From the sequence record PV662128.1: a stretch of DNA of 64,000 bases, one strand, 5' to 3'. The position numbers and the translations under genes are program-made. Each line of letters begins with the position of its first letter. Position 1 is the stretch's first letter. The notes below the pieces were generated by a model. That model worked only from the letters and a program-made list of their open reading frames with translations. It did no database searches and was not told the DNA's origin. Below, piece by piece: positions 53,372 through 58,016 of the stretch.

Positions 53372-53490
53372 TATTTTATGGTAGGGGTGCTTTAGGCACT
53401 CCTGCCGGACTCATCATGCATTTTAATTCAACACACAAAAAGAATGAGACCTGTACTATTAAAGTAAGAACAATGATAGGAGTTGTTTTC

Positions 53491-54174
53491 ATGGATTCAT
53501 TAAGCTGGTACGAAAAATTTAAAGCGGTAACCGGGGATTTGATTCCGGTTGATCTTTTACGGCACTGCTTATGGTCGATCACCTTTAATGATAAAGCGCA
53601 TGATTTGAATCACGTTTATCATGTTTGTAGACAAGGAAACGATCTTGCACTATTACAAGATTACGATGACCACTGGCGAAGCCTAGTATTGGCCGGTTGC
53701 CTGCTTCACGACATTGGGTGTCGTTACGATCGTAAAACCCATCATCTCATAGCGTATGGGTTGGTCTTCGACTTAACCCATCGTTATTGCACCGGACACT
53801 ATTCGCCAGAAGAGACATTGATCATTGCGAAAAGTTGCCTGGAGCACAGAGCAAGCTGGGAAGGTGATTTCAGTCATCCTATTTCAGAAACGGTTGCTCT
53901 GGCCGACAGGGGTATTCCTGATTTCGAGTTGTATTGTAAAAGAGCTGTTCAGTTCAGGTTAGATAACAACTTGACTGAAGATGTTTTGGTTGAAGAAGTT
54001 CGCGTTCACATGTTAGACAAGTTCCTACCTAAGACTGGTTACGTTTGGAAAAACTATCCCGAATTAGGGTTGTCTTTATATGAACAAGAATGGAAAGTGT
54101 TCCACGATAAACTTAAAGATGAAGTTGTCTTTAGAGAGGCTGTATTAGAAGCGTACCGTAAATTAAAATCTTAA
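53491..54174 (+). CDS. HD-domain phosphohydrolase
   Basis: HDLNHVYHV ... CLLHDIG ... EHR ... ALADRG metal-ligand pattern; ATG 53491 after AGGAG. Confidence 0.85.
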   Translation: MDSLSWYEKFKAVTGDLIPVDLLRHCLWSITFNDKAHDLNHVYHVCRQGNDLALLQDYDDHWRSLVLAGCLLHDIGCRYDRKTHHLIAYGLVFDLTHRYCTGHYSPEETLIIAKSCLEHRASWEGDFSHPISETVALADRGIPDFELYCKRAVQFRLDNNLTEDVLVEEVRVHMLDKFLPKTGYVWKNYPELGLSLYEQEWKVFHDKLKDEVVFREAVLEAYRKLKS

Positions 54175-54180
54175 TCTATA

Positions 54181-54211
54181 TTGTTAACGTCCTCATAAGG
54201 GGCGTTAACAA
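54181..54211 (+). terminator. hairpin terminator
   Basis: TTGTTAACGTCCT ... GGGGCGTTAACAA with G-U pairs. Confidence 0.65.
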
Positions 54212-54231
54212 TAACCTACAAGGAAATCACT

Positions 54232-54726
54232 ATGATTATTTTATTTGCTGTTTTTGCTATTATCCTTTGTATTGGTTTTTGTTATAAAAAGATCAATATC
54301 AAAAACGACATCGGAATCAAGGTTAATAATGCCACAAAAATGGTTATCGATATTAACCTTGGTAAAATTAAAGGTGAGTTCAAGATAGTTAAACACAGTC
54401 GGTGTTTCAAACCCAGGGTCTCGCCTGGATTAAACGGATTGGTTTACACCGTTCCTGTGTTTTGTACGTTATCCGAATTCATCACTGGTCTATATTCCGA
54501 AGAAATAAGGCCTTACGACAAACAGAAAGATAAACACCTCTTAGACGTCGTCAGAGCCATCGTAGGGGCCGAATTAAAGGACGACGGTATGATTGCCTTA
54601 TTCGACGACACGACCCTTTGTGAGACCGTAGAGAGAGCCAGAGAGTCATTTGTTATGAATAAGGATTATTTCTTCTCCGAGAAGGGATGGAACCGAGGTA
54701 ATGTTATTGCACCTATCAACCTTTAA
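54232..54726 (+). CDS. N-terminally membrane-anchored protein
   Basis: MIILFAVFAIILCIGFCY signal/TM segment; AAGGA upstream. Confidence 0.75.
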   Translation: MIILFAVFAIILCIGFCYKKINIKNDIGIKVNNATKMVIDINLGKIKGEFKIVKHSRCFKPRVSPGLNGLVYTVPVFCTLSEFITGLYSEEIRPYDKQKDKHLLDVVRAIVGAELKDDGMIALFDDTTLCETVERARESFVMNKDYFFSEKGWNRGNVIAPINL

Positions 54727-54740
54727 TTAAGGATTTTAAA

Positions 54741-54881
54741 ATGTCTGACATGTTTGACGTGGATCAACTCAACAACCTGAACCTGGAAGCTGTTGAAGAG
54801 AAAGTGGAATCTCTTCGTGATGGCGGTGGCGAGGTTGTCGAGGCTTCCGATGAATGTGAAGGCGGCGCCTGCAAAATTTAA
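54741..54881 (+). CDS. 46-aa acidic peptide ending in a ribonucleotide-reductase-alpha-like redox tail (missing from ORF track)
   Basis: MSDMFDVDQLNNLNLEAVEEKVESLRDGGGEVVEASDECEGGACKI*; TAAGGA upstream, terminator downstream; CEGGACKI versus E. coli NrdA C-terminus CESGACKI. Confidence 0.85.
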   Translation: MSDMFDVDQLNNLNLEAVEEKVESLRDGGGEVVEASDECEGGACKI

Positions 54882-54890
54882 AACGCATAA

Positions 54891-54924
54891 TAACTCCTAC
54901 TCCCCATATGGGGAGTAGGAGTTA
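54891..54924. terminator. perfect 34-bp palindrome, bidirectional terminator (ACTCCTAC family)
   Basis: TAACTCCTACTCCCCAT|ATGGGGAGTAGGAGTTA between convergent genes. Confidence 0.85.
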
Positions 54925-54944
54925 GATATACTTATTTTTTTTTC

Positions 54945-55841
54945 TTACAGCATGTATTCAGGAGCGGTAACTTTAGCCGCTTCACGAGTCATCGCAGCAA
55001 GAGTACCAGAATCGGTGAGACTCTGGAGAATCGCCGTAGGCTGCAGGAATCCAGATTCAGCACCGCGACCAGCTGGGTTATACATCGGGAGTTTGCTCAG
55101 GAAAGAACGAGCAATCTCTTTAGCGGCCTGGGTATCGAAATCGATAAGGCCGGTGTATTCCATGTTGATATCACGCATCTGACCGGCTTCGTCTTTGTTA
55201 CGACGCATCTGGATTTCAACGGTGTTACGCGGCATGATACCTACTGCAAGAGCAGCGTGGGCAACATCACGCATATTACGCGTCGGTTCCAGATAAATGT
55301 TCGCACAGGAGATTTGGTCGATCAGGAGATCGCCTGGATCATCGAGGATGACTGCACGAGGATGACCCAGATCCGGATCATTCAAACCATACAGAGACCA
55401 GGAGCGATGGAGGTTAGTATAAACCTCACCTTCGATATCCACGCCAGCATGGTTGATAACACCGAGGGTACGAGTACCGCCCGACGGCACGGAGAATACA
55501 CGGCCAGAGAAACGCTGTTCTGCGAATTCGGTCTCAATACGTTCAGAGAGACCGGTGATTTCACGACTACGCGTTTCAAACCAGGATTTCGCCAGTGAGT
55601 GAAGGATGTTACCTGCCGGCATACGGCTAAACAACGCAGGGGTACTGATACAGAAGCACCAGGTCTGCTGTTGGATATGCGGATGCTCGGAGACCATGTT
55701 GGCGATATTGGGAGCCCAGCCATACTGGCCCCCTTGAGGGCCATTCAGAACGGGACGATCACCTACGCCGAACGCAGAGTACCATTCAGAACTCCCAGGT
55801 ACCAGCGTGGTTGTGTTCCTAAACGGAGTGTTGCTTGACAT
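54945..55841 (-). CDS. tail tube protein
   Basis: 298 aa directly downstream of the sheath; GPQGGQYGW and related motifs as remembered for phiKZ gp30-type tubes. Confidence 0.8.
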   Translation of the reverse strand: MSSNTPFRNTTTLVPGSSEWYSAFGVGDRPVLNGPQGGQYGWAPNIANMVSEHPHIQQQTWCFCISTPALFSRMPAGNILHSLAKSWFETRSREITGLSERIETEFAEQRFSGRVFSVPSGGTRTLGVINHAGVDIEGEVYTNLHRSWSLYGLNDPDLGHPRAVILDDPGDLLIDQISCANIYLEPTRNMRDVAHAALAVGIMPRNTVEIQMRRNKDEAGQMRDINMEYTGLIDFDTQAAKEIARSFLSKLPMYNPAGRGAESGFLQPTAILQSLTDSGTLAAMTREAAKVTAPEYML

Positions 55842-55856
55842 TTAGAGTCACCTTAC

Positions 55857-58016
55857 TTAGGAGTTAGTGGTATCGAGATCTTCTTCGTTATACGCAGCAA
55901 GACTCATGTTCATCATATACTTACCTTTACGGAACCAGACGTTACCAACGCTGTTCAGGACAGCTCGGCTACCGGCGCCAGTTTCGTTGTAAGTGCAATC
56001 AACCCGAAGGTCTTTGAACATGGTACCCATGCGACGGCGGATAGCCGCTTCAGAAGTATCTTTGACGGTTGACGCATAAGTAGTAGCATCAATGGTCGTA
56101 TCACCGGATACCAGTGTCCACGCATCAGCTATAACCTTCTCGATACAAACCGCAGTGAAGTTAGTGATCAGATCCTTCAACACAGCGTCGTTATCGTCAT
56201 ACACTGTTGGAAGTGCAGGACGGTAATACTGAGACGTGTTGTACGGACGAAGACTGATACCGCCTTCATCGAAGTTATTCGCCGCAGCGTCATCACCTTC
56301 GAAGTCCATGGTCGGAGAATGCATCTGGGTCAGAATGCGGTTATCGCCATGATCCGGAGAATTCACCGAGCTCAGGTTACCAGAGCTGTTACCGCCAAGA
56401 CGAGCGAAGAAGTAAGCCAGGTCCAGCGTTTGCGGGAATTCAAGGCCGGTGCTTTCGTCGATGATCTTAGCATCCCACAGGGAGATAGCTGCACGGGACG
56501 CCGGAGTGCCGTAAAGCGAAGATTCCGGATACAGACGAATCTTAGTCGCCAGAGACTGCATCATGGAATAACGCTGGGCGATGGTGTTGTTTTCCAGCCA
56601 TTCGGAAGCCTGCAGGATCAGAATCTGATCTTTGCGGGTGTTCCAGAGTTCGATCAACGCGTTCTTAATATCCAGGTTATAACCCACATCCCAGATAACG
56701 GATTGACGGTTACGTGTCCAATCGTTAACAGTAGATGATTGAGCATAAGCCTGAATATCGGACAGATACAGAGACTGAGCTACGGTCCAAGCGTCTTTGG
56801 TGCTCAGCTGGTCGATGTGACCGTTGTTAGTCGCCGGATCGAAGTTGTAAGTCCCTTCAACCGGAACTGGCGTAGTCCGATCTGCTTTCAGGAACGGAGA
56901 GATACCGCCAGCAGCGTCGATATAGCCGGAGTTAGCGAACGGGTTAGCGTCATCCACCAACATACACGCATAATACGGAACGTTGGTATGGTTGGTCAGA
57001 GTGAACGGGTTCATCTGACGAATTGGGTTGACGCCCGTTACGTTAACAAGCGCTGATTTACCAGCAGCCAATTCCGCCGCATACAAAGCCGCACAAACTT
57101 TCTGGATGTTCTGATCGTAGACCTTGACTTCGTAGAACGGAGCAGGGCGCAGAGTCACCTGACGGTTGACGTTAGCGTTGGTGAAGTCACCTACTGCGGT
57201 CGCCAGGCTGTAACGAACATCGTACTTGTCTTTGGTGTTGAACAGCGTGTACGTTGCCGATTCACCGCCATTAACGTTGGAGAAGAAAGTCGGGACGCCC
57301 GTAGAAGATTTTACGTACATTCTCATTGAGAACGGGAACACGCCGTATTCTTCAACGAAATCTGACACCGAATCCCAATCCGTGGAAGCATTGAGGCCCA
57401 TGGTCAAACCGTGCAGGTTATACGCGTCACCAACACCAGCCGGAAGTTCGAAGAACGGATACTGAGTAAACGTAACTTCTTCCTCGTTCACCGTTTCGGT
57501 GAACGTCGATTTTACGAGCTTGCCGTATTCTGGAGTGGTCGGCGCGGTAACGTCGAGCTTAACCAGTTTAACGTAAACGCCCGGCACCGCGGTACCACCG
57601 GTAACAGGGATCAGCTCACCCTTGTCATCGAAAAGATAGCTGCCATCAGTCGCACGCCGATACTGAGGAATAGATGTACCGGTCCCGATAGCGATAGCGT
57701 AAGCAACACGAGCTACTACGGTGTTAGCAGAAACACGGCGTACGCCAAAACCACCCTGACCGCCGGAGGTGATCATCGAGATCAGCTGAGATACCGCGGA
57801 GTAGTAAGGGGTATCGACATCCAGGATATCACCGTAAAGATTGGTAAAGTCTCTTGAGTTTATGAAACTCTGTCCGAGCTCACCCTTAGGGGTGACCACG
57901 GAAATAACCGGGTAATGACAAGGATACGTAGGCAGAGACGTTACCGGGTTTAAGCGGCTCTTATCGTCCATACCGTTATTGATGACTTGTCCCGGAATGA
58001 TTTTTGTAAAGCTCAT
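55857..58016 (-). CDS. contractile tail sheath protein
   Basis: 719 aa; N-terminal IPGQVINNGMDDKS, VTPKG, C-terminal sheath-like region; phiKZ gp29-type position. Confidence 0.85.
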   Translation of the reverse strand: MSFTKIIPGQVINNGMDDKSRLNPVTSLPTYPCHYPVISVVTPKGELGQSFINSRDFTNLYGDILDVDTPYYSAVSQLISMITSGGQGGFGVRRVSANTVVARVAYAIAIGTGTSIPQYRRATDGSYLFDDKGELIPVTGGTAVPGVYVKLVKLDVTAPTTPEYGKLVKSTFTETVNEEEVTFTQYPFFELPAGVGDAYNLHGLTMGLNASTDWDSVSDFVEEYGVFPFSMRMYVKSSTGVPTFFSNVNGGESATYTLFNTKDKYDVRYSLATAVGDFTNANVNRQVTLRPAPFYEVKVYDQNIQKVCAALYAAELAAGKSALVNVTGVNPIRQMNPFTLTNHTNVPYYACMLVDDANPFANSGYIDAAGGISPFLKADRTTPVPVEGTYNFDPATNNGHIDQLSTKDAWTVAQSLYLSDIQAYAQSSTVNDWTRNRQSVIWDVGYNLDIKNALIELWNTRKDQILILQASEWLENNTIAQRYSMMQSLATKIRLYPESSLYGTPASRAAISLWDAKIIDESTGLEFPQTLDLAYFFARLGGNSSGNLSSVNSPDHGDNRILTQMHSPTMDFEGDDAAANNFDEGGISLRPYNTSQYYRPALPTVYDDNDAVLKDLITNFTAVCIEKVIADAWTLVSGDTTIDATTYASTVKDTSEAAIRRRMGTMFKDLRVDCTYNETGAGSRAVLNSVGNVWFRKGKYMMNMSLAAYNEEDLDTTNS

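Follow-up and report, generated by a model that had tools for sequence, protein, structure and literature searches.

The final 64 kb of the 257-kb genome of the Miami-like Raoultella phage VB_ZK_P1 (PV662128.1), which form the 64,000-nucleotide window analyzed here, contain at positions 54741-54881 a small gene of the plus strand. Our comparisons support the view that its 46-amino-acid product mimics, as a free-standing molecule, the C-terminal redox tail of NrdA, the alpha subunit of class Ia ribonucleotide reductase (RNR); the likeness is in fact one of homology. The product is a free open reading frame (ORF) without the RNR catalytic barrel attached, so it is a tail homologue and not a reductase subunit. 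In the related Klebsiella phage Miami (genus Miamivirus, about 96% identity), the same ORF is annotated as gp244, 'hypothetical protein'; Miami has been named in work on the core genome of the nucleus-forming (chimallin-encoding) phages, treated there as a family. The gene has the following signals and parts:

54729..54733, plus strand: Shine-Dalgarno-like AAGGA, read from the sequence, 7 nt 5' of the ATG; a ribosome-binding site is annotated at the equivalent site of Miami.
54741..54881, plus strand: gene of the 46-amino-acid peptide including the stop, ATG to TAA, product ending in SDECEGGACKI; NrdA-tail-like family, best PHROG match phrog_10239.
54759..54818, plus strand: acidic N-terminal part, residues 7-26; predicted to be helical, family-specific, with no NrdA or NrdB counterpart; possible docking element.
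54816..54878, plus strand: NrdA-tail-like part, residues 26-46 (RDG ... CEGGACKI), delimited by the tail comparison and profile tests; predicted to be unstructured.
54855..54872, plus strand: Cys39 ... Cys44 pair (CxxxxC), with exactly two residues (K, I) after it; neither cysteine varies in the family alignment of 63 sequences.
54891..54924, no strand assigned: perfect 15-bp hairpin, likely a bidirectional terminator, between the convergent peptide and tail-tube genes; T-rich on both sides.

The likeness to NrdA is concentrated at the C-terminus. NrdA of Escherichia coli ends in ...RDGAEDAQDDLVPSIQDDGCESGACKI, the enzymes of Raoultella and Klebsiella in ...DDLAPSIQDDGCESGACKI, NrdA of Pseudoalteromonas phage PH357 in ...EVVEVEDESCSGGACKI, and the phage peptide in ...RDGGGEVVEASDECEGGACKI; the geometry, CxxxxC followed by two residues and the stop, is the same in all of them. 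All 80 Enterobacterales NrdA proteins that were fetched, including those of Raoultella, Klebsiella, Erwinia, and Pantoea, end in DDGCESGACKI, and seven of the final eight residues of the peptide (CEGGACKI) are identical to this tail. The RDG at the tail start is common to the peptide and to NrdA of E. coli, Raoultella, Klebsiella, and Erwinia. A profile of the C-terminal halves of the family scores 23.5 bits on the Raoultella tail and 20.6 bits on that of E. coli, a value that none of 20,000 composition-preserving shuffles reached; against NrdA, the same profile has E = 2.8e-4 at proteome size (Z = 4300). In a comparison of the family profile with the PDB, the ten best matches were all to residues 751-761 of E. 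coli NrdA, end to end, with E-values of only 0.3-0.5. The original prediction, which likened the end of the peptide to that of NrdA, is thus borne out by identity, profile scores, and shuffling.

The likeness is one of protein sequence and of the C-terminal part. Blastn against E. coli genomes gave no DNA-level similarity to nrdA, and a DNA-level origin from an enterobacterial nrdA was rejected on these grounds. The single peptide sequence had no match in Pfam or NCBIfam and no significant match in the PDB, where NrdA did not appear. The profile of the N-terminal half found other family members only; it found no NrdA, nor the NrdB of E. coli or PH357. To the eye, this half resembles the E. coli NrdB end, and we considered that it might imitate the C-terminal tail of NrdB; the profile searches gave no support.

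By its sequence features and conservation, 54741-54881 is a real, translated gene. As the original prediction had it, the ORF follows a Shine-Dalgarno sequence and has its own terminator: the hairpin at 54891-54924 has a predicted energy of -28.4 kcal/mol (z = -7.65, equalled by none of 200 shuffles), is followed on its 3' side by a T-run at 54932-54943, and is annotated as a terminator in the Miami record. A consensus terminator scan missed it because the plus-strand T-run begins 7 nt past the stem. The hairpin probably terminates two operons, that of the peptide and that of the tail tube and sheath. The peptide was rightly described as acidic, with 13 acidic (D/E) against 3 basic (K/R) residues, and its predicted ending is confirmed. 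AlphaFold2 predicts helices at residues 7-11 and 15-26 (predicted local distance difference test, pLDDT, of about 70) and no secondary structure for residues 27-46 (pLDDT about 57); the mean pLDDT of 64 gives the model modest confidence. In Erwinia phage pEa_SNUABM_7, whose genome is otherwise unrelated, the last 22 codons of the homologue gp040 differ from ours at eight bases, all of them synonymous, which directly shows purifying selection at the protein level.

The family is large. Tblastn of phage records detected the peptide in 86, nearly always as a small free-standing 'hypothetical protein', in phages of Erwinia, Klebsiella, Serratia, Dickeya, Salmonella, Yersinia, and Proteus. Two very large protein collections, searched by profile, yielded 66 clusters and, among 1.84 billion proteins, 49 representatives at E <= 0.001. 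The family counts given below refer, unless stated otherwise, to the set of 97 distinct proteins collected. The cysteine pair followed by exactly two C-terminal residues is present in 97/97, the cysteine spacing is 4 in 85, and no protein has an additional cysteine in the module. The last residue is isoleucine in 90 and leucine in 7, and the penultimate residue is lysine in 72; over the last 46 residues, the net charge has a median of -10. In 9 of the first 66 clusters, the last eight residues are those of E. coli NrdA itself. The peptide of VB_ZK_P1 matches phrog_10239 (function unknown) with residues 4-46 aligned to profile positions 6-47 of 47 (E 2e-4), and has weaker matches to phrog_24014, phrog_38753, and phrog_14561. 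The original prediction saw this as a matter of jumbo phages; jumbo carriers exist, but the frame was too narrow, as the gene is also carried by T7-like and roughly 100-140-kb phage contigs.

This conservation bears on the reading of the ORF as a non-functional remnant of the nrdA 3' end or a chance ORF, which is now extremely improbable. Its shortness and the near-absent transcription of a homologue in phage φR1-37 (see below) speak for such a reading. On the other side stand the 86 phage records and at least 97 distinct proteins, an own start codon, a conserved N-terminal part that is not NrdA, the invariant cysteine pair, the restriction of tail changes to synonymous ones, and the lack of nrdA-like sequence upstream. 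The conservation pattern, as far as the sequences tell, essentially refutes it, in agreement with the earlier view that this is not a simple gene fragment.

It is also very unlikely that the gene encodes the precursor of a secreted or modified peptide, with a glycine-ended leader, a 16-17-residue core closed by a disulfide loop, and a merely convergent likeness to NrdA. A glycine triplet lies in the last 26 residues, before the cysteine-bearing stretch, in 79 of the 97 proteins, and the gene size and two-part build do resemble such precursors. Against this, no maturation enzyme, peptidase-transporter, or immunity gene is adjacent in about ten neighbourhoods, the context is not conserved, and the core would be strongly acidic. 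Nor does convergence account for the match of the last 8-11 residues to the very C-terminus of NrdA.

Several members of the family carry additions at the N-terminus. The search of 1.84 billion proteins gave 12 representatives of larger proteins (115-360 amino acids) with the module at the exact C-terminus, and fusion members also match phrog_10239. Eight of the 12 fall into two groups with conserved N-terminal domains, F1 of about 110 residues (e.g., in Salmonella phage SA002) and F2 of about 180 residues. In a contig resembling Serratia phage PCH45, a 259-residue F2 fusion occupies the exact place of the 49-residue peptide of PCH45, with the same gene order. The F2 fold is predicted with confidence (pLDDT 80-96 over residues 1-180), and its comparison with the PDB and BFVD gave no meaningful match (the best, with E 3e-3 and template modeling scores of 0.25-0.40, was to an uncharacterised phage protein). 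Judged by the sequences, the family pattern is that of a variable front and an invariant tail. In PCH45 (L010:4234-5169) and the related contig (L027:4936-5865), a gene for a Kelch-repeat beta-propeller lies directly downstream of the peptide or F2 fusion gene. Elsewhere in the family, one protein (P0046) has a cysteine-rich N-terminal extension, and three others (P0055, P0059, and P0062) have Gly/Pro/Glu-rich, collagen-like ones.

A phage reductase was sought in the whole 257-kb genome. Tblastn with class Ia NrdA and NrdB (from E. coli and PH357) and class III NrdD and NrdG (from locus L018) gave nothing at E <= 0.1, with positive controls scoring fully, and a Pfam scan of all 48 ORFs of at least 450 amino acids in the genome identified 17 families, none of them RNR. 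The phage therefore has no detectable RNR of class I, II, or III. The same tblastn was negative for the whole genome of an unrelated carrier, Erwinia phage Alexandra, where class II was not searched separately; the RefSeq annotation of Alexandra lists no reductase of any class. Since no RNR is found in the genome, the peptide must have its target in the host, or act on something other than a reductase. The original prediction had stated that no reductase body lies upstream of the peptide gene, and this is upheld: the 164-amino-acid upstream ORF matches PHROG 35362 only, and tblastn is negative. It had also proposed to see whether the nrdA of the phage lacks a terminal CxxxxC, a question that falls away as the genome has no nrdA at all.

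With these results, the idea of a split RNR, in which the peptide is the trans-supplied tail of a phage-encoded tail-less reductase, is refuted for this phage and extremely unlikely overall. Split reductase genes do occur in phages, and some carriers have a reductase near the peptide gene. The only reductase seen beside a family member, however, is the class III NrdD/NrdG, and class III enzymes work without such a tail; NrdA of PH357, the phage reductase that the peptide matches weakly, has a tail of its own. Neither this phage nor, for classes I and III (class II not being searched separately), Alexandra yielded a reductase that could lack one.

What remains of the original prediction is a peptide that acts as a booster or as a decoy. 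The cysteine pair of the NrdA tail is reduced by thioredoxin or glutaredoxin and then reduces the active-site pair after each turnover (PMC11903788, PMC9669993). The alpha tail and nucleotides compete for one active-site pocket, and by this competition the pocket is accessible to a tail (PMC11903788). Our preferred reading, which we hold tentatively and at slightly less than an even chance, is that the peptide acts as a trans-acting tail mimic in the host relay of RNR, thioredoxin, and glutaredoxin, as an extra electron shuttle that raises the output of deoxynucleoside triphosphates (dNTPs) by the host. Host thioredoxin or glutaredoxin would reduce the peptide, which would then enter the active-site pocket of host NrdA as a tail in trans; the N-terminal helix, or the larger N-terminal domain of some relatives, may dock it there. 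The gain in dNTPs would serve a phage that has to make very large amounts of DNA. The sequences show the homology, the invariant cysteine pair and its C-terminal position, the purifying selection, the lack of a phage RNR, and the setting among replication and nucleotide-metabolism genes in other phages; the target, the redox cycling, the docking, and whether the effect is a boost are inferred. Action on the host enzyme is proposed because the phage has no reductase. The shuttle is favored because both cysteines are always kept, because RNR-less jumbo carriers depend on the host enzyme, and because the role suits all carrier types.

The surroundings of the gene in other carriers point to the supply of DNA precursors. 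Its immediate neighbours are not conserved among phages, and the wider setting is repeatedly that of DNA replication or nucleotide metabolism. A deoxycytidine monophosphate (dCMP) deaminase gene lies three genes from the peptide gene in Alexandra and pEa_SNUABM_7, and dCMP deaminase and thymidylate synthase genes are found near it in another locus (L110). The T7-like contig has it between the helicase-primase and DNA polymerase genes, the roughly 105-kb contigs beside PolA with NrdD/NrdG/ThyX close, and a 142-kb contig near thymidine kinase.

A number of observations weigh against this interpretation and are brought together here. The whole-peptide profile recovered no full-length NrdA among 1.84 billion proteins at E <= 0.001, and the long-form profile had no match in the PDB; given this and the weak E-values in the PDB, the case for homology depends on about 11-21 residues. 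From RDG to the cysteines, the peptide is six residues shorter than host NrdA, and conservation in the middle of the tail is higher inside the peptide family than in host NrdA; together, these features suggest an interface made for one particular partner, which is not necessarily NrdA. Since the host enzyme carries a tail tethered to it, the gain from an additional free one may be small. A crude CxxC motif search for thioredoxin or glutaredoxin genes in the phage gave noise ORFs only and does not exclude such genes rigorously. The F1 and F2 domains have no conserved cysteines and no match in Pfam or PHROG, and F2 has no recognisable fold either; the module could therefore be a tag that serves some other end, and the reading does not account for the N-terminal helix and the two fusion domains. 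Finally, a single transcriptome was found, and in it the φR1-37 homologue g117 is nearly silent under the condition used, with RNA-seq values of 3.9, 1.5, and 1.2, compared with about 100 to 34,000 for its neighbours (PMC4848604 supplement).

Two further explanations accept the NrdA likeness and differ in what the peptide does. In one, which we regard as unlikely, the peptide is an inhibitor or decoy: the free tail would fill the NrdA pocket or the tail docking surface, slow re-reduction or substrate binding, and lower host dNTPs, for instance when phages that feed on degraded host DNA shut the host down. T7-like phages obtain most of their nucleotides from host DNA, and one of the carriers is a T7-like phage contig; yeast Sml1, moreover, is a small disordered inhibitor of eukaryotic RNR that acts via the C-terminal tail of the large subunit. 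The evidence of homology to the NrdA tail is identical for the two roles, and the competition of the alpha tail with nucleotides for the pocket (PMC11903788) would suit inhibition as well. In the two RNR-less jumbo carriers, however, the DNA demand per burst is likely to exceed what one host chromosome supplies, and blocking the only reductase of the cell then looks self-defeating. A steric blocker also needs no strict retention of both cysteines, such as is seen in 97/97 proteins, and this retention is more in keeping with a dithiol/disulfide role than with simple steric blocking. The computed results do not separate the two, and we favor the extra electron shuttle over the decoy or inhibitor.

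The other explanation, to which we give still less credence, directs the peptide at the redoxins: as a copy of the substrate for which they are best known, it would bind or titrate thioredoxin 1 or glutaredoxin 1 of the host and so alter how much redoxin is available or its redox state, or it would bring a redoxin to a partner of the helix or fused domain. Host thioredoxin is the processivity factor of T7-type polymerases, and the peptide gene adjoins a family A DNA polymerase gene in two contigs; the module also behaves as a C-terminal tag on unrelated domains. In addition, what the peptide copies of NrdA is precisely the portion recognized by redoxins (PMC11903788). Against this, a dithiol substrate would simply be turned over by redoxins unless it were continually re-oxidised, and most carriers are jumbo phages with another polymerase type (a divergent family B enzyme in this phage).

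In VB_ZK_P1 itself, the gene has the following neighbours:

53416..54174, plus strand: HD-domain-like phosphohydrolase, two genes upstream; PHROG 3921 and a weak Pfam HD match; in Miami, 'putative metal-dependent phosphohydrolase'; context only.
54232..54726, plus strand: 164-amino-acid upstream neighbour with a hydrophobic N-terminus; PHROG 35362 (function unknown) is its only match; not kept beside the peptide gene in other phages.
54945..55841, minus strand: tail tube protein, convergent downstream neighbour; Pfam Phage_TTP_14, E 1e-102; outside the system.

A two-gene module formed with the 164-amino-acid upstream ORF was considered and rejected, as the upstream genes of five phages do not align. 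A likeness of this ORF to F2, suggested by eye, was not confirmed, and the profiles of both fusion domains had no match in this genome. Outside the window, three large ORFs of the phage carry homing-endonuclease domains of the LAGLIDADG type (loci L008:39818-42136 [VBZKP1_218] and L005:21-2849), and one of these is an AAA ATPase whose ATPase domain is interrupted in an intein-like manner. The record 'Stenotrophomonas phage BUCTxx100' (OR529409.1) is about 96% identical to this phage and to Miami over 2 kb (positions 54000-56000 of the window), and its host label looks doubtful.

Two relatives of the peptide deserve separate mention. The φR1-37 gene g117 (L013:3959-4114) has a sigma-70-type promoter, a ribosome-binding site, and a terminator predicted in its record, yet almost no reads. 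One family member, P0044, is frequent in metagenomes, where it occurs in 53 index blocks and on contigs of up to 581 kb; its gene (L015-L017) directly follows a gene for a MYG1-like hydrolase and lies near RND efflux genes. The P0044 contigs have no match in the phage collection and no PHROG matches, and the carrier may not be a phage.

Compared with the Enterobacterales NrdA tail, the peptide shares the RDG start, an acidic stretch (predicted here to be unstructured), and the CxxxxC followed by exactly K-I, but it is unattached, begins at a start codon of its own with an N-terminal part, predicted to be helical, that is peculiar to the family, is six residues shorter in the middle with a conservation of its own there, and is encoded by phages without a reductase. 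The only annotated reductases that it matches in the phage collection are the NrdA proteins of Pseudoalteromonas phages PH357 and J2-1 (weakly, E = 6). They have an EVVE-type middle and a GGACKI end, as in the peptide; there, however, the tail ends a full-length alpha subunit of 1162 amino acids encoded next to nrdB. In the PH357 gene (L003:96-3584), E. coli NrdA aligns as two blocks, and the insertion of about 320 residues between them is probably an intein. The match to phrog_10239 covers the full profile and conveys membership only, as that family has no name, function, or literature.

Other small proteins are known to act on reductases. Sml1-type regulators are small and disordered, and act where the C-terminal tail of the large subunit regenerates the active site; unlike the peptide, they are host-encoded inhibitors and not copies of the tail, and the peptide matches no Pfam or NCBIfam family. 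C-terminal peptides of the RNR small subunit inhibit as free copies of a subunit tail that bind the large subunit, but it is the beta tail that they copy, and the N-terminal half of our peptide found no support as an NrdB tail. NrdC of phage T4 is a phage redoxin that serves the phage reductase; it likewise is a phage gene feeding the electron supply of a reductase, but has a thioredoxin fold and a phage reductase to serve, whereas the peptide has no redoxin fold and its phage no detectable reductase. The original prediction did not recognise a described system here, and our literature searches on the RNR tail and jumbo phages, tail mimicry, and tail motifs likewise found no account of a free-standing reductase-tail gene. 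From the sequence comparisons, we rate the element as homologous to a well-known tail, but new in its genetic form and setting.

It is conceivable, although on balance somewhat improbable, that the case extends to a general strategy, in which RNR-less phages hijack the host enzyme with a diffusible, docked dithiol tail of 40-60 residues, supplied in trans and recharged by redoxins, which speeds or re-tunes re-reduction. The supply of DNA building blocks is set by RNR, and no part of the RNR cycle is less understood or more variable than re-reduction (PMC11903788). If the proposed role is true, it would represent a previously unseen and very cheap route of viral control over host nucleotide metabolism, and nature itself would have proved that the RNR tail is able to function when detached from the enzyme. 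The peptides would then be natural reagents for studying how tail, redoxins, and active site meet, and a function would follow for small 'hypothetical' genes that are often missed by gene callers. Should the peptide be a blocker instead of a booster, it would be a natural peptide aimed at a validated antibacterial target.

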